Notes under the pieces: generated by a model
What the model was told of the DNA's origin: nothing
Databases searched by the model: none
What the model saw: the letters and a program-made list of their open reading frames with translations, nothing else
Shown: one piece after another, positions 9,896 to 19,076 of the stretch
Layout: each line of letters opens with the position of its first letter
How positions within the stretch are numbered: the first letter of the stretch is position 1
NCBI GenBank assembly: GCA_013115145.1
Contig: JAAPAO010000404.1
Location: forward strand, 1-32,356
Source: Perkinsus chesapeaki ATCC PRA-425
Taxonomy: Eukaryota; Protista; Perkinsozoa
Direction: 5' to 3'
DNA length: 32,356 nucleotides
Made by a program: the position numbers and the translations under genes

Positions 9896-10520
9896 TTAAA
9901 ATCGCTGAGCGAGTGGAGCAGAAACTGTACCGCTAAAAGACAGATGAGTAGGACCCGACCCCACCAGTGCTGCCATCGAAGCCAACTGAGACGGAGGATA
10001 TTTAACGAAAGTGAGCGGAATCTGGCAGCTTACATCTGTCTTCGTCGCTTCCCAAAGATGCGAAGTCGTCGTTGAGATCATCACCGAACACCCAGTATGG
10101 GGAGGCACTCATAATGGGAGAACTGGGTCCTGATATTGGACAAGCGTTGGGGTTGAAACCATACCTGAAGACAGCCACGTGCATGGCGGAGCGAATAAGG
10201 GTGGACAGCAAGGCACGTACACAGAACAATCAGTGATATCTCCAATGGTGACCTGCCAGCCCGAGTGATGCCCGTGTACCCAGCTCCTGACATGTTGGGC
10301 CTCCACGTTGGTGTTTAAGCGTAGGAACCACTGAAGAGCAGTTGCACTTGAAGGACCGCTACCAGATCCATCCGTGATCGGAGTGACATACATCTGAAGT
10401 AAGCATCACCGCAACTGGAAGAATGACCCACGTACCTCGAAGAGCCTTCCACCTACAGAGTTAACCAACGCCTGCCTCTGCCATTCACAGTCCATATCCA
10501 GAGGACATCGAACCATCACA
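9896..10520 (-). CDS. Hypothetical multi-exon protein
   Basis: Exon-like segments (MDCEWQRQALVNSVGGRLFE|MYVTPITDG...WQVTIGDITDCS..YGFNPNACP..DDFASLGSDEDR|LASMAALVG) separated by GT-AG intron candidates. No family recognised. Confidence 0.35.
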
Positions 10521-10559
10521 CACGCTCCTTCTCCTTCCTAATGAAAAACCACATAGGCT

Positions 10560-13500
10560 TCAAAAAGTGGGGTACCGTAATCCCCTCACCTCAGCGGCAG
10601 AAACGAATAGTTTGTCGGCGGGCAGGGCGAATCGGCGGATCTCCGGCATGAGGTTCTTCACTCGAACTTGGAACATCGTACTCGGTGACTCATCCGTGGG
10701 AGGCGGGCTGGTGTGCCGTCCGTGGAGCAGCGTGTCGTAGCCCTCGTCCATGCCAACACTGTAGGTACGCGGATCGTAGGATGCGAAGGACCCCAATGGG
10801 GAAGAACTGCCGATGTAAGGCTGAGCACTGCGGGCGCTGCCAGTTGCCGAGGCTGCTGAGGGCGTCGCCGGCTGCTGCTGTTGCTGATAGGCTGGCTGAC
10901 CTCCGAAGGTAGTGCCTCTGAAGCTGGCGGTGGAAGGTGGACCCCACACGCTGCCTCTATCTGCCAGACCGTGGGACCACACAGATGCATCTGTGTTAGG
11001 GAAGGGAGCATAGGAGGCATGCTCTGGACTTGGCATTGGTTCCCATACGCTTCGAGTGGGCGATATATCGGAAGACACTCCAGCAGAGGTAACAGACGGT
11101 GGCCTAGCAGGTTGAGGAGCTGTTGCCGGGGGTTCTCGGACATGTTGAGCTAATGGTGTGGTGGGAAGAGTTGCGGCAGCACTCACCCTTGGCGTCGAAA
11201 CGCGAACCGGCGGGCGCTGCGGTGGTAGTGGAGGAAGTGATGGAGGAGGCGGAACAGCTGGTTGCTTCGGTTGCGGGGCTGGTCGTCGGGAGGATGATGC
11301 TGTCTCGGGCCTATCTACCTGCTCCGCGGGTGACCGGTCGGCCTTCACCTTCACCGGGGCCTTCTTCTTATCTACAGCAGTTTCGGTTACAACCTTCTGC
11401 GTAGAGGCCGGTGTCGTCGTGATCGGTGGGGGCACCTTTTTGGCCGGAGCTTTCTCGGGAGTCCGACCTGCAACTGCTGCAGGAGGTACCGCGGCCTTCG
11501 CAACGGGCTTTGCGGCTTCCTTCTGCTGTGCCTTCGCCGCTGCCTTCTTAAGCTCTGCTTGCTTGGCTTTTTGCTCCGCCAGAATCTGTTGATGCCTCTT
11601 CTTCTTGCTTTGGACTGCACACCAAGCCATGTCAGCGGACCGCTGAGCAGCCTCAGTGGGGCTAATGGATGCCGCTGGAGGTTCTACAGCCGGTGGTGGC
11701 TGCAACAGCGAGGCTGCTCTCTCCGCGGCGGTCTGCTTGTACTTGCCACTATGAACTATAAGTTCTAGTTCACTATCATCTTCCTCTTCGCTGCCAGCCA
11801 AGTCCGTGCCCTTTCCTGAAGCAGTGTCAACATGCCCACTAGTGGCCTGTGAAGCGTCATCTTCATCTTCAGTTGCCGCAACCTCTGCTGTTGCAGGAGT
11901 CTTCTTCTTCTTGGCTGCCTTCCGTGCTTGTGGCTGCTGTACCGTCTGATGTTTTCCTCCAACGGTTCCTGCGGCCAACTCCAAAGCCCGTTTGCGGTCC
12001 CTCTCAGCAATGCGCGTTTCAAGTACCAACAACCACTGAGCATAGATAGACTTCGCCCTACTAACAGTGTTTTGTTGCCACTGTTTGGCATCAGGCTCCG
12101 ACGAGGCACAGTAGGCGGCCATCCACTTGTTCAAGTCATCAACGCTTCCCCAAGCTTGGATGCATGCATGCCACCAGAGCTGGTCCTTCGGTATGGTGAG
12201 GGTCGCAGGCTGCTCTCCATGCTGGGAGGAGGAGCCCTTCTTCTTCGACCCCTTCTTCCTGTTACCCTTCTTGGAGAAACCAGCAAGACTGCCCGCCCAC
12301 GCCTGCTCGATTTGGGCCGGCAATGGTGGGGCGTTAGAGACCGCTCCTGATGCTGCCATAACTTGCGGCGTCGGCAAGACTGTGGTGAACTTCTGCTTCA
12401 GCACGTTCATGGACAACCTCGCGTCCTTCTTCACCAGTCCGGTAACCACATGGCGTGGAGTGCAAACTAGTTTACCGCTGCAGCCATTGGTGTAGACACA
12501 GTTCTCATTTTGGCGATCTCGGACCAGGTTTTGGATGCACATGTCGTGGAACGCCCTCTCAGGATGGCAGCCTTCGCTGCAGCGTACCCTGGCTGGATGG
12601 AGCGCCGTGCCCAGAGGCATATCGCACTTGAAGCATCGGGGACCTTGAACCACCCTTCGCACGTGCTCTTGGATGGTTTCCACCGATGCCGAGTCAATTA
12701 GCTGCTCCGGAGTGAGCTGCCTGCCCATGGGACCCGTGAGAACGCTGCCTTCGGACGTTCTGGTGACATGCCAGCCGGAGTCGATTATCTTACTCTTTGC
12801 AGGAGGTCCAGCCTTGGCCTGAATTTCCACACTCACTTGCGCACTGAGCACAATGCCTACCTTATCACTAGCAGGAGCAGGGTTGCTGGCAGGCGCATTC
12901 TTTTCCGTTGCCGCTTTCTTTGGCGCTTTATGGGGAACCTGAACGATGTACGATAACATCGAGGTGATCCATTCACTGCATCCACCTGTAGCTTTGGAGG
13001 GATCAGCTGCCTCTGATGTTCTTTGCAGAGACCTTCCATGGCGTCATCAAGCTTGGCAGCTGCTTCGGCTATATACCTCTCAGCGACTCTAAGTTCTCCG
13101 GGTGTCGCAGCACCCAACGTGGCGGCCAACTGAAAGCACGGACCAGCTCAGAAGGAGGATGTATAGGAGCAATACCTGCGAGGCCGACAAGGTGCCGCTG
13201 GACGTAGTCGCTGCTACCAACGATGCCGTCCTAGGTACGAGAATCTGAGCAAAGAAGACTCTCATCAAGCCGGCCATGGCGATGGACTGGTACCTTCCTC
13301 TTAGCAGCAGTTCTAGTGCTCACCGTATCAGGCACGGCGGCTTCTGGTGGTGGCGCTGGTGTCTCCTCATGGACGCTGTCTTGCTGTATTGTGCCTGAGT
13401 ATTAAATTAGCCATTTTCCGCTTCACTGTGAAAGCTACTACCTGGAGACATAAAAATAAGTATGTCTCCGTCTATAATTTTTTCCTCTTTCACTGTTCGA

Positions 13501-16500
13501 TTCACATCTCGCTTCACCGACTCTCGAACGTTGACCTCCTCCCAAACCTGAACGGCTTCATCCATACTAGGTGGAATATGTTCAACGAATACCTCCACAG
13601 CGTCAGCATCTGTGCTCTCGGCGATGGTGGCGCCATCAGGAGTGTGGCTGGCTATTTTGGCTCGCACAGCGGGAAAGTAGTCCCTAAGCTTTTGGCGGAC
13701 ATCAAAGGTCATCAGACCGATGGATACCAATCTTAGACTCTGAGAAGCAGTCCTTAAGCCACCGAAAGCAACCAGCAGCCCACCTTGGGATGAACGAATT
13801 TGACCCACACAGTAGCCTCCTCAGAGACCATAGGAGGACTCTGCTGTGCTCCCTTCTTAGCGACCGGCTGTTGTTGCTTCGTTGCCGTTGGCCTCTTCAT
13901 CATACACAGGACCTAGAAAGGGAGTCTGTGAGCCTGACAAGTGACATTCACCCTTACCACAACGTGCCCTATGATGTTTGAGTTGGCCCGCTGTTTGTGG
14001 CGGTCACTCCGAGTAGACTGTCGCCGCTGCTCTGACGCATCATTCGACTGTTGTTGTTTCTGTTGTTTGCTGCCTTGCTGTTGATTCGCCAGAGCTGCTT
14101 GATGGGCTGCTGCTTGCACCGTTGATGGCATATACGATGCAATCTGATATAGAGGTAATTGCGCCCAAGCTGGAGAGTTTCCGGGCCCTACCATCCTTGA
14201 CGGCGTCATCAGTTCGAATCTCTCCTGATGAGTATCAGCGTAATAGCGCAGCGCGAAGAGCCTCTGCAGATGCTTAGGAATCTTGAAATGCTCCTCCACC
14301 TGCAAACCAAGAACATCTCCGCGAGCCCATCGCGCCTGTTGAAGTCTCACAGCCTTCATTAGCCTCTCCACGGGGATATCCTTTCTCACCAGGAATTTCC
14401 GGCCCTTGTGGGGAAACATGCCATTGAGATAATATCCGTCAACCTATGCCAAGAAGACTCGTAATAGTCAAAGCGACCGCTGGTAGCCTACATTAGTGAG
14501 TTGCCCCTCAGTGACCAATGTCACCTCGATCTGCATCGACGCTGAAGCCGCTGCCGCCAAAGCAGCAGCTTGAACTGCTACATTGATAGGTGGGTGCAAG
14601 TGAACCTCCTCAAGGTCTCTTACTTTCCTGACTCGACTGGCCGTTCTGTTCTGCTCTAGCCTGTGCCAAAGAAAGCTGGTCATATAAGAGAGGGGAGTGC
14701 CCTGATGGATGCAAGGCATGCTCTCTGGCCACCAGCTGATGACACTGCAGATGTATAGGCTAAATTGAGAGGGGAGTTACCGTACAGAAGTAAGTTGGCA
14801 GTGATGACGTTACTTTGTGAATAACTGGTCCTCTCGGTAAAGTCGCATTGACATCAGCAAATAAGCTAGGTCTAATATGCCTGAGACGATGATGATAATA
14901 GTAACCGCCATCTCAGTAACGATGAGCAACTGACCTGAAGTCGACTCCACGTTCATAGAGGCGGTCCTCTTGATCCTCCCTCACATAGCAGAGCCCAACG
15001 CATGCCCAGTCAGGCGAGAATACCCATTCAGAGCAGTGGAAACCATCCTGCAGGACCTGAGGCAAACCCAGTTCTCCACGCTAGATGACTTAACTACCTC
15101 TCTAAAGCCGTCATCAATCCTGCACCATCTCCCTCTGCGGCTCTGACGGACAAGCACGTAGTAGTGGCCCACCGAGAGATCGTCAGTGTCTGCGGCTCCG
15201 CAGACGTTCGTGCAGAATGTGACAGAGTGGAGACGATAGCGGAACTCAGAGGTTCGACAAGGGTCCTGAAAAGGCCACGTTGCTCTGTCGCGATAATCAT
15301 CGGGTGCCATGGAACCCACCGCGGCTTTGGCCGATAGTGCAGCTGCTGGACTGTCGTCACTGCTCGAACCACTAAGGCTTGCCTTATCCTCAGAAGCATC
15401 GTCCCCTTCAACCCTGCCAACCACAATGTGCAGTTTTTTTCGCATAAGCACGACTCTTACTTCTTTTTGTCATCGACTTTTCCAGTCGCTCCTCCTCGCG
15501 AAGGTACCTGACGATCGGTGATAAGCCACTCATCCCCCGATAGCTACTCTACCTGTTTCTGCCGCTGTCCTGCCGCCTCCACCACTACTGGGTCCATATA
15601 TGGACTGAAGTCCAGCTGCTCAGAAATATCAAGCCTACACCGGTAGAGTCTCCTCGGTATCACACAGGCTCCTCAGCCTACCGTTCCTTGATTTTGTTAA
15701 TGAACTGCAGATGCAGGATTGGAGGTATGCTGATGAACTGACAGCTCCGTTTATTTCCGGACCCGTCATCTGAAAGCCGAGGACGGTCTTTCCACTACGG
15801 CTCTTCTAACTTACCTTCGCCACCAGTCGCGACCACGTCTCCATGGTTGCCGCAGCAGGTACCCCCGACGTTGCCACATTCCACAGTACTAGCGAGGTTC
15901 TGGGTCCAACAGGACAGATGCTTCTCGATGGAGCCTGCTGTAACACGTCCGACACAACGATGCCGCGAAGTTCGTTGCTTACTGCTCTTTCCGTTGTTAA
16001 AACGCAGATGGCTGAAAGAGTAAGCTTCGCTAGTCGGCGAGTCACGATCCTGAGCATAGCGAAGATCCAACGCCACCGCGCACTCTGGATAAGTACTACA
16101 GGATGGTTGTGATGGTGATTGTTACCGCGGCCAGTAGTGGAGGATTTAGACTCATCATCCTGAAGGTCAGGAGTACTAAGGCGAACCGAAGCCAAACGGA
16201 AACCGACCTGATTCGCTGCCGAGTAAACCGCCCACCCCTGGAGAAGATCAGCGAGCCTCTCCCATGCAGACTTTGATATCAAACTAAGACAGCAGCACCA
16301 ATCCACTTCGTCCCTTTGGTCACTTTACCTTGCATGCTTCTGCAGCTTGTCAAAAAAGCTGGAATATATTCTCTCGGGCGACACACTGCAGTTTGGCCCG
16401 TTGAGACCGAGGGCTTTGATGACACCCGATGTGTCAATTACTTGGCACGTGCATGGTATGGGAAAATCACTTTCGGGTGGATCCTCGTCCGGGCCCCTTT

Positions 16501-19076
16501 CCTGCACCATAGACCATTTTCTTGGCGCGCGACTTATTATCCTACTTTTGCTCCATGGTCTTTTATATTTGATCCCTCGCATATGCGACAGATGCCGCTC
16601 GCATCTTGCTGCATCTCCATTCGAGCGAACAGCAGTTGGAGCTCTCGAATGAGGCAAGGCTGCGGTGGTGCTGGAGGGGTGTCATCGGGATCATCTAATC
16701 GAACGTACGATCCTCGTCCGTGCATCGCTCCGCTGAGTTTTACCACCTTCATCTTTGTCCGACTCTTCCTCTTCCCCACCGCTAAGCCCTTCATCCTTCT
16801 TCCTTAGAAAGGCAGCAATTTCGTCTCGTAGAAGTTGCTGTTGTTGTAGCATATAGTCGACACACTGCGTAGAATCCATTTAGTCATCCCAGATACCATA
16901 ACCATCAACTCACCTTGTTTAATTTCCTCATAACACTCCTCAGCATCAGCTGATGCTTCTGCAGCTCGCCAAATCTGGGATGCGAAATCCTTCTCTTTTC
17001 ACAAGACAGAAGCTCGTCCACGATTTCCATCAGCTGCTCAATCACCACTCGAGACTACAACCACGACGACAGGATCACCAACGCACGGGTCTGCTGCCAA
17101 CACACCTTTCTGAACCTCCCGAGGAGATGCCTCTCCATCTCGTCAAACCTCTTGGCCGCAGCGGCACCTAGAGTAATCTGTACTGTCAGGCTGTCAGAAT
17201 CATCTCCTACCTCTGCGGTTCGATTCTGATCCGCTGCGTGGTTCTGAAGCCGGTGGCGTTGCCGGCCTCCTCTGCGATGACAGTAACTCCCTCTCAGCCA
17301 CTCTGGCGTACTCGGACCTAGCCATCAGTCTTTAAACCTTCTCGCGGTAGAGATTCCTCACTTTCCAGTAACCAATTCCATGATCATTCTCAAGTCACCA
17401 CAAACTCCCTCCAAATCATCCTCGATAGACTGCAGTGCCTCCATACGCTCCTCAATGCACGCGGCGGCCTCCGCATCGACGCTGCCTAGGTCGGGGATTC
17501 TGAGGTATCTCAGATATCCTACAGTGATGTAGTCTAGTACTACCCGTCCCCGAACGTAGTGTAAAGATCAGGGCCATGAGTGGGCTTCGTCTCGATCCCA
17601 TATATCACCTGCGACGCGAATTCCCCAGAGACGAAATCCCACCGTCCTACCTTCCGAACAGCTGGGATATAAAAAAGACTTTGCAAGAGGGAGTTGATGT
17701 GATCCGTAGCCAGGACGTTGGAGAGCAGCGGGCCTCCAAGCGTTCCTCCTTTCGTAATCAAATCGCAGTCACAATCCGCTTTGCTGCAGCTCGAGCTGCT
17801 ACTCTCCTCATCGCCTATCGATCACTAAGTGACCCTTTGACCCATAATGCTTTACCTTCGTATTCGCCCTCATCGCATTCATCAACACCATCCTCTTCCT
17901 CCTCTTCTTCCATCCTAGCTATGGCCCACAATGCCTCCCTGTACTCTGGTGACAGCGGTTGGCGAGACCATGTATCGTGCGTCATAGACCGGGTGAGGGG
18001 GCCGACACTCAGGGGATGTGCAAATCTAGGGTACCTACCGAAAGAGCTCCCAACAGCCGCCGCTGAACCATTGGTCACTTACACACTGGCTCGGATTACT
18101 AGTGTACCGTCAGAGCTCAAATATCCATCACGACGATTAACAAACCTAGTAGGAAAGATGCCCCTCGCAGCGTGAGAAATCGCACCTTGTGTCGAGTAGA
18201 GTATGCCACCCTCGATCGGGGCAGACGTAGCTGAAGGTCCAGGTATCGGTTTTGGTGTATGGCCACTTGTGCTTAGTATTCATAACCGATATCTTATAGT
18301 ACACACACGGGCAACACCTAGCAATACCAAACTCGACCTCTTGGCGATGATGATCGTCCCCTCACAGTACCAGTCCGGTGGGTAGGGCTCCAACGGCTCT
18401 TTATCTTCCGGTTCCACTGAGTTAGTGGTTACTACCGGTTTGCCAGCTTCTATATCATCCTCGTCTTCATCCGAGCTGCTATAGTCGTCAACGGGATCGA
18501 TGTCCTCCACTTTGGCTCGCTTCCCTCTGGACGCGGTATCTGTCGAGTCCACACTGGATCAGTGCACGCCCAGCATCTACACTACTGTCGACATCGCTGC
18601 TGTCATCTGAGCCATCGGCAGGCTCGTCACTTCCAGTGGTCGAATTTGAAGTTTGGGGCGGTACAACTTCGACGAAGGCCGATAAGTGATTGTGAGAAGA
18701 TTTTGACCTGAGCGACCGGTGCGAGGAGGTGGGATCAGGATCGGCGTACTACCCTTGGGGCCAAACAAGAAGCCTGAAATTAAATCCGCGAACGTTCTTT
18801 ACATCACTACGGACACACACGCGAGGTCGTGTGTCCCTCCAGAAACGCTTGATTACGAGTTCAACCTACCACAGGAAGGAAATGCGACACGACCCGACCT
18901 CGTTCGTATCTTGCAAGGTTGAACCTAAGATATCCTACCTCGTTCTCTCGAAGAGGTGCGAACCCGTTTTGCTCTGCTCCAGCCTGAGGACGGCCATTGG
19001 CCGCTGCTGCTGAGTTCTTCGTGGAAGTAACACTACTGCTCACGGCGTTGGCGGAAGAAGCAATGGTGCCGCTCAT
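10560..19076 (-). CDS. USP7/UBP12-like protein: MATH + USP domain (catalytic Cys replaced by Asp) + two UBL domains + C4HC3 zinc finger + long disordered tail
   Basis: MATH: VELVIKRF..VRGFNFRLLVWPQG..HLSAFVEVV..WTFSYVCPDRGW..DGYLSSDGTLVIRASV. Cys box: SNVLATDHINSLLQSLFYIPAVRK. Also RELQLLFARM; His box YRLHSV..GHYYVLVR..RWCRIDD..LCYVRE. UBL1: MQIEVTLVTEGQ..FLVRKD..LQRLFAL. UBL2: VWVKFVHPK..VWEEV..IIDGDILIF. Canonical introns join 13400-12940 in frame to the 799-aa last exon. One junction near 17519-17574 needs a GC donor or a frameshift. Confidence 0.85.

Follow-up and report, generated by a model that had tools for sequence, protein, structure and literature searches.

A probable non-catalytic USP7 paralogue in Perkinsus chesapeaki with aspartate in place of the catalytic cysteine

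The contig JAAPAO010000404.1 of Perkinsus chesapeaki ATCC PRA-425 (assembly GCA_013115145.1; 32,356 nucleotides, analysed over its whole length and here called the window) carries on its minus strand the gene of KAF4660688.1 (FOL47_007056, 2368 aa), whose public label is hypothetical protein or Peptidase C19 domain-containing protein. We conclude, with a probability of roughly 0.8, that this is an intact gene derived from the ubiquitin-specific protease (USP) USP7, and that its product is a maintained paralogue without the catalytic Cys, probably non-catalytic and likely to act as a scaffold. Judged from its sequence, KAF4660688.1 is most probably no longer active as an isopeptidase. An earlier reading of the DNA letters (the sequence-only reading) had proposed a maintained, dead USP7-like scaffold at this locus, and the proposal is supported by an invariant Asp at the Cys position, an intact gene, non-synonymous change (pN) below synonymous change (pS), a profile match to USP7, collinear domains and two Cys-bearing paralogues. 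A pseudo-deubiquitinase is marked by loss of a residue essential to thiol catalysis together with evolutionary maintenance, and both are seen in the Asp-bearing family to which the protein belongs.

The public protein is reproduced exactly by an exon chain in the window, with splice sites verified by script as local two-exon joins against KAF4660688.1, which also served as the query sequence in whole-protein analyses.

9933 to 19076, minus strand: whole coding region of KAF4660688.1, 44 exons and 43 introns, with the ATG at 19076 and the stop codon TAG at 9935-9933

The introns are canonical GT-AG introns without exception (43/43), with lengths of 40-73 nt and a median of 47; about half begin with GTAGG, GTAAG or GTAGT. 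The longest exon measures 2.2 kb (exon 40, 10590-12818). The sequence-only reading had described a frame open over about 8.5 kb; this was mistaken, as stops are abundant in every frame across the gene region and the coding sequence is divided among 44 exons over 19076-9933. Several of the introns are stop-free and in frame, so that a naive reading of open reading frames (ORFs) passes through them.

The positions that bear on catalysis lie in three parts of this gene.

17651 to 17814, minus strand: exon 8, the Cys-box exon, reading ...LLSNVLATDHINSLLQSLFYIPAVRK
17702 to 17704, minus strand: GAT codon of Asp343, at the catalytic-Cys position (human USP7 Cys223), from the sequence and the HMMER alignment
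16373 to 16381, minus strand: S662-P663-E664, an SP[D/E] motif at the place of the QHD/QQD box, with P663 invariant in the family alignment
15098 to 15265, minus strand: exon 25, the His-box exon, reading YRLHSV...VGHYYVLVRQSRRGRWCRIDDG, with H924 encoded by 15166-15164 and D941/D942 by 15115-15110

The GAT codon (17704-17702) sits within ...LLSNVLATDHINSLLQ... on the minus strand, where ...GGPLLSNVLATDHINSLLQSLFYIPAVRK is read near 17700 and a GT donor comes next. The exchange of Cys for Asp at this codon had been claimed from the letters; it is read directly in the sequence, and HMMER puts Asp343 on Cys223 of USP7. The claim that the GHYY and WxxIDD motifs are kept also holds, as GHYY and WCRIDD with H924 and D941/D942 in place. 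The spacing from H924 to D941, counted on the sequence, is 17 residues, the same as between His464 and Asp481 of human USP7. Further motifs follow the Cys box on the minus strand, namely LIRELQLLFARME, IDTSGVIKALGL..CSVSPERIY, IPPILHLQF and CYVREDQEDRLYERGVD. The QHD box had been called unrecognisable. This is right in that QHD itself is lost, the position reading SVSPERIY, and falls short in that a family-conserved SP[D/E] stands in its place: exon fragments of a canonical paralogue on contig C3282, described below, align their QQD onto SPD/SPE of the Asp-bearing family, so the acidic residue of the box survives. Of the features expected of a peptidase C19, the catalytic Cys is thus Asp343 in KAF4660688.1 and Asp in all family members, the QHD/QQD box of KAF4660688.1 retains its acidic residue alone, and the His and Asp (H924, D941 and D942) are invariant in an eight-row alignment.

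The Asp recurs in every homologue in which we could read the position. Four copies from several assemblies of P. olseni carry it, the copies that cover the region reading LLSNVLATDHINSLLQ and VGHYYVLVRQSRRGRWCRIDDG; GCA_013115135.1 and GCA_013115125.1 are among the independent assemblies concerned. Six further lineages (P0014/P0021, P0015, P0016, P0017/P0024, P0018 and P0019/P0025), which stem from metagenome-type assemblies at ENA, JGI, Logan and NCBI, match with 28-34% identity at E values between 1e-45 and 1e-57; Asp is present in 6/6 of them, as ATDH, ATDN or GLDH. Perkinsus encodes this Asp by GAT and the metagenomic contigs by GAC, and the codons on either side also differ synonymously; in a nine-row alignment no sequence departs from Asp at the Cys position, from the His or from the Asp-Asp pair. 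The argument of the sequence-only reading that a single sequencing error is unlikely is strengthened by this recurrence in independent P. olseni assemblies and metagenome contigs. Its suggestion to align orthologues was answered in part: the Asp is found in P. olseni and the six metagenomic lineages, while a P. marinus orthologue was not recovered among the homologues returned. The proposed dN/dS-type check was run as pN/pS against P. olseni and gave a pN of 0.118 and a pS of 0.720 over 983 alignable codons (0.134 and 0.704 in the USP part), non-synonymous change thus lying far below synonymous, in a contrast that is qualitative but clear, as pS is saturated and well-aligned blocks alone were counted. 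On these comparisons the gene is intact and under purifying selection, and the Asp-for-Cys state defines, by alignment, a conserved family of two Perkinsus species and six metagenome-contig lineages that extends beyond Perkinsus. Conservation between KAF4660688.1 and the metagenomic homologues is uneven along the protein.

MATH core: about 80% identity
USP core: 34-45%, about 36%
UBL1-2: 37-42%
Zinc finger: 28-39%
Helical insert after the Cys box: about 20%
C-terminal tail: about 20%

The difference between the MATH core and the USP core indicates that the strongest constraint acts on the MATH domain.

The reading that best survives beside our own is that the domain is still an enzyme, in which either the Asp-His-Asp set or a relocated Cys (C965, in WVFSPEWxC) hydrolyses ubiquitin, a UBL or another substrate; we consider this unlikely. 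It is favoured by the invariance of Asp343, His924 and Asp941/942 across homologues that are 28-45% identical in the USP core, by a His in nearly all members at the position after Asp343, by the retained acidic residue of the QHD box, and by reports claiming activity for USP39, which has Asp for Cys, and for USP52, with USP53/54 re-classified as active (PMC10919355; PMC12037411). It is disfavoured by the loss of Gln and His from the QHD box. C965 is the only invariant Cys of the USP domain; it aligns with USP7 Ala513, adjoining Tyr514, and probably faces away from the cleft. The conserved Asn five residues upstream of the Asp corresponds to USP7 Asn218, the oxyanion-hole Asn, and is Gly in P0016. 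The UBL4-5 module, an activator of the catalytic domain in human USP7, is also not detectable: USP7_C2 (PF14533) found no match in the genome scan or in five full-length family proteins at E<=0.01. A related proposal, that the invariant Asp-His-Asp site is a thiol-free active centre, water-activating or with Asp as the nucleophile, and hence the first Cys-free USP-fold hydrolase, is in our judgement distinctly improbable; we know of no papain-fold deubiquitinase that uses Asp as its nucleophile. If it were true, oxidation and thiol-directed probes would possibly leave the centre unaffected, and its fusion to a RING-like finger would make a single-chain ubiquitin editor.

The descent of this probably dead protein from USP7 is seen first in its architecture. 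By profile and alignment the domain order of KAF4660688.1 is MATH, USP fold, UBL1-2, linker, C4HC3 zinc finger and a long C-terminal region.

18022 to 18944, minus strand: MATH/TRAF-like domain, residues ~45-250, over exons 1-7, with an acidic low-complexity insert
14841 to 17725, minus strand: domain of USP (peptidase C19) fold, from residue 336 to ~1000; its Cys box is followed by a long helical insertion
13387 to 14557, minus strand: UBL1-UBL2 region of USP7 type, residues ~1065-1345, Pfam USP7_ICP0_bdg (PF12436)
12438 to 12632, minus strand: C4HC3 cross-brace zinc finger, inside the 2.2-kb exon 40 (10590-12818)

The Pfam UCH profile (PF00443) matches KAF4660688.1 with 48.7 bits (E 1e-12, profile 3-233/254), above its cut-off of 23.9, and the homologues with 34.8-55.6 bits. 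USP7_ICP0_bdg gives 22.8 bits for KAF4660688.1, below the cut-off of 27, and 31.1 and 34.5 bits for homologues P0016 and P0025. MATH_2 gives 20.3 bits for KAF4660688.1 and 26.9 bits for P0016 (E 6e-6, profile 6-136/136), against a cut-off of 32 bits. The sequence-only reading held that MATH and UBL1/2 are retained; this stands for UBL1-2, with PF12436 above cut-off in two homologues and a profile alignment to UBL2, and for MATH it comes down to a collinear match below the Pfam cut-off. The MATH domain of the Asp-bearing family is matched by MATH-like exons from the canonical paralogues (E 1e-7). Taken exon by exon, the His-box exon matches UCH (E 4.5e-4) and one UBL exon matches USP7_ICP0_bdg (E 2.4e-4), while the Cys-box exon alone gave no Pfam UCH match at E<=1.

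The zinc finger follows UBL2 with the pattern CFxC...C..GC...H..C...C..T..C.G. Residues C1553, C1557, H1564, C1567, C1580 and C1586 are invariant in an eight-sequence alignment, and the first Cys pair is present in 7/8 sequences. An AlphaFold2 model of the finger has weak structural matches to ZZ/RING folds (E 0.2-1), Pfam zf-RING-like is reached at E 0.29, and the ESM Atlas leads to RING/FANCL_C (0.75-0.78) are sub-threshold. A conserved motif, LWWNACLxAFGG, comes after the finger.

Among characterised USPs, USP7 is, by profile comparison, the closest to the Asp-bearing family. A profile of eight family members searched against the PDB gave 42 matches at E<=0.001, headed by 25 to human USP7 (best E 8e-10) and continuing with USP47 (1.9e-7), USP9X and USP28/25 (USP28 7e-5). 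The profile aligns with USP7 in three collinear stretches: one, the Cys box, puts the Asp on Cys223, one, the His box, puts the His on His464 and the Asp-Asp pair on Asp481/482, and the third covers UBL2 (...DGDIxxF). Single-sequence phmmer against the PDB gave weak matches of 12-13 bits, exclusively to USP7 and with the Asp placed on Cys223, and the nearest ESM Atlas clusters (score 0.92) all combine UCH, USP7_ICP0_bdg and MATH_2. As a stand-in for the domain of KAF4660688.1, AlphaFold2 was run with a nine-row alignment on the catalytic domain of a homologue without introns (L024:10583-12160), and its model has a predicted template modelling score (pTM) of 0.63 and a predicted local distance difference test score (pLDDT) of 61.5. 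Foldseek found 155 PDB matches to this model at E<=0.001, topped by the catalytic domains of USP28 and USP7 (E ~1e-6). In the model (m6433c45839c6), four long helices, at 66-93, 95-111, 130-158 and 165-192, separate the Cys-box helix from the ELQLLFARME helix. This helical insertion in the thumb looks, on the model, like a family-specific element that is still longer in Perkinsus.

Derivation from another USP lineage, related to USP47, USP9X or USP28, with a MATH-like domain gained independently, would account for the very weak single-sequence similarity to USP7 (12-13 bits), for the first rank of USP28 in Foldseek and for the MATH_2 score under the Pfam cut-off. We nevertheless regard it as very unlikely, because the family profile prefers USP7 (8e-10) to USP47 (1.9e-7) and USP28 (7e-5) and has its third collinear match in UBL2, two family members exceed the cut-off for USP7_ICP0_bdg, the nearest Atlas clusters all carry the three USP7-type domains, and WC[KR][FI]DD and RKAVY are common to the KAF4660688.1 family and USP7.

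The genome also holds canonical genes of USP7 type. The family hidden Markov model (HMM), run over other USP loci, picked out contigs C299 and C3282, in each of which MATH-like exons lie upstream of the Cys-box exon.

C299:13000-21000 (L012), minus strand: canonical USP7-type gene, Cys-box exon at L012:3946-4158
C3282:53000-61500 (L004), minus strand: canonical USP7-type gene, Cys-box exon at L004:4494-4631
C875:118000-127999 (L006), minus strand: two tandem USP genes, each with an NLGATCY Cys box and a long, Cys-rich C-terminus; a weak DUSP match in one

The C299 gene has the motifs GLRNHGATCYLNGLLQ, FTQHD, GHYYAF and WFRFDDD, and also reads FVGLRNHGATCYLNGLLQ and AFGWDSMDAFTQHDV; human USP7 is the best PDB match of its Cys-box exon (E 6e-7), and from its motifs the gene is apparently canonical and active. 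The C3282 gene has GLENLGATCYLNGLLQ, FTQQD and GGHYYAF, and also reads AFGWDTADLFTQQDAQEL. Single exons of both genes have human USP7 as their first PDB match (E ~1e-6), and both Cys-box exons match Pfam UCH with 33-37 bits. The MATH exon of C3282 (GYRLLVYPCG...LGAFLEIVPP) is nearer to the dead family than that of C299, so that C3282 may be the closer relative. The tandem genes on C875 were considered as USP7 copies and ruled out, having no MATH domain and a DUSP-like C-terminus; they look USP48-like rather than USP7-like.

The sequence-only reading had recommended a search for a separate active USP7, and the two Cys-bearing USP7-type genes on C299 and C3282 are apparent examples of one, which makes KAF4660688.1 a third, divergent paralogue. 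The contrary view, that the KAF4660688.1 gene is the sole USP7 orthologue of its lineage and that Perkinsus lost USP7 activity altogether, could be drawn from our own-genome scans. Whole-genome Pfam scans with USP7_ICP0_bdg, USP7_C2 and MATH profiles (PF12436, PF14533, PF00917 and PF22486) found nothing beyond the KAF4660688.1 locus, and its exon pieces and DNA found no paralogue. These nulls are false negatives for the two canonical genes, exon-by-exon scans being insensitive (a PF00443 scan missed even the KAF4660688.1 locus), and the exons that the family HMM found on C299 and C3282 carry intact GATCY, QHD/QQD and GHYY with human USP7 as best PDB match (E ~1e-6), leaving loss of USP7 activity highly improbable. 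That the Asp is a sequencing or assembly artefact, or the locus a decaying, untranscribed relic of a USP7 duplication, is barely credible: the locus is covered by one contig only in this assembly and single-exon searches returned no match, but the same Asp stands in independent P. olseni assemblies and in ENA, JGI, Logan and NCBI contigs, the reading frame and canonical splice sites are kept in 44/44 exons, and pN is far below pS against P. olseni.

Several points weigh against the conclusion that KAF4660688.1 is a non-catalytic, USP7-derived scaffold. Catalytic loss is deduced from the missing thiol alone, and the invariance of His and Asp-Asp at ~30% overall identity is unusual for a dead site, so residual or altered chemistry is possible. 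The pN/pS contrast is a qualitative one. While the MATH_2 matches are collinear in all scanned members, every one falls under the 32-bit cut-off, the USP7_ICP0_bdg cut-off is reached by two homologues only, and the zinc finger has no significant match in the structural and HMM searches made with it. The AlphaFold2 model depicts a homologue rather than KAF4660688.1 itself and drops below a pLDDT of 50 around the His box, with a mean of 61.5.

If the scaffold reading is correct, a division of labour among the domains can be suggested. MATH would bind specific partner peptides; the MATH domain of USP7 binds short client peptides, and the DxGW segment of KAF4660688.1 is presumably the counterpart of the DWGF groove of USP7. 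The Cys-less USP fold, in which many structural motifs persist, would together with UBL1-2 hold ubiquitin or a partner without hydrolysis, and the C-terminal cross-brace zinc finger might serve as a reader or an E3-like module. In this way KAF4660688.1 could share clients with the active USP7 paralogues and either rival or support them. The family would then be a natural experiment in how an enzyme that removes ubiquitin can become a binding protein or scaffold. It bears on debates over the roles of pseudo-deubiquitinases and over whether an Asp in place of the Cys, as in USP39, really means an inactive USP. For work on Perkinsus, which parasitises shellfish, it is a defined target, and USP7 itself is among the most studied deubiquitinases.

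Comparison with USP7/HAUSP (yeast Ubp15, plant UBP12/13) shows the same order of MATH, USP fold and UBL1-2, and the shared motifs NSLLQxLF, RKAVY, YxLHxV, GHY(17 residues)DD and DGDIxxF. The two differ in the nucleophile (Cys in USP7, Asp in KAF4660688.1) and in QHD against SP[D/E]. Unlike USP7, KAF4660688.1 has a helical insertion of ~200 residues after the Cys box, no detectable UBL4-5 (USP7_C2) or C-terminal activating tail, and ~1000 extra C-terminal residues with the conserved C4HC3 zinc finger; it is further set apart by the two canonical USP7-type genes in its own genome. Those genes resemble it in their MATH-like exons upstream of the USP domain, C3282 sharing RLLVxPxG...AFxEIVPP, and differ in keeping GATCY, QHD/QQD and GGHYYAF, where KAF4660688.1 is without GATCY and QHD.

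USP39/Sad1, classed as a pseudo-deubiquitinase, likewise has Asp where the catalytic Cys would be (PMC10919355). As part of the spliceosomal tri-snRNP it is a conserved USP-fold scaffold, like the role proposed here, though its inactivity is debated. The two proteins are not orthologues: in USP39 the catalytic His is missing and a ZnF-UBP lies at the N-terminus, whereas KAF4660688.1 keeps His924 and the Asp, has MATH and USP7-type UBLs in a USP7-type architecture, and ZnF-UBP found no match in a Pfam scan of the full-length family proteins. PAN2/USP52 and USP53/USP54 have USP domains first classed as inactive, structural or regulatory modules, and none of them is USP7-like. PAN2 is unlike KAF4660688.1 in that its whole triad is missing and it is fused to an exonuclease; USP53/54 are active, K63-directed enzymes (PMC12037411). 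Within the USP-fold pseudo-deubiquitinases, the family is new in being USP7-derived, keeping His and Asp, carrying a fused and conserved zinc finger, and extending beyond Perkinsus. The sequence-only reading knew of no catalytically dead USP7 paralogue, and our literature search agrees, finding no paper on one and nothing on deubiquitinases of Perkinsus.

The homologues were reached from an 827-residue open exon (10563-13043), which brought up the P. olseni orthologues; with one of these as query, a region search returned KAF4660688.1 and the distant homologues. Single-exon searches mostly failed because the exons encode ~20-60 residues. The Cys-box exon had no match in the PDB, among 1.84 billion representative proteins or in a homologous-protein search; a 799-aa ORF of the locus had none in an exact protein look-up, and metagenome scans with the family alignments gave none.

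The metagenomic homologue loci, at four places with DNA for three contigs, are densely packed single-ORF genes, and the P0017/P0024 lineage, seen in several assemblies, has an identical gene context each time. Source assemblies of the metagenomic carriers are ERZ28593858, JGI 3300032250, ERR14822394 and GCA_041443045.1. The three contigs (L024, L025 and L026) are very compact eukaryotic DNA, apparently intron-free, with intergenic gaps of ~50-150 bp. They share a conserved gene order of MT-A70, RFC, Josephin, histone, PI4K, two unknown genes and the dead-USP7 homologue; for two neighbour genes on a metagenomic contig no counterpart was detected in Perkinsus. At L026:10001-15306 (Logan ERR14822394) the homologue is called as two ORFs of 1372 and 396 aa that overlap by 4 nt, and a 90%-identical cluster member on a different contig is one 1768-aa ORF, indicating a frameshift or assembly error in one of the versions. 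In P. olseni, KAF4673880.1 (3817 aa; L023, JABANN010000040.1) covers three genes (2413, 1025 and 331 aa) of JABANP010000026.1 (L022) and is probably an over-merged gene model. Synteny of P. olseni with the KAF4660688.1 locus holds, with a Bac_globin gene downstream.

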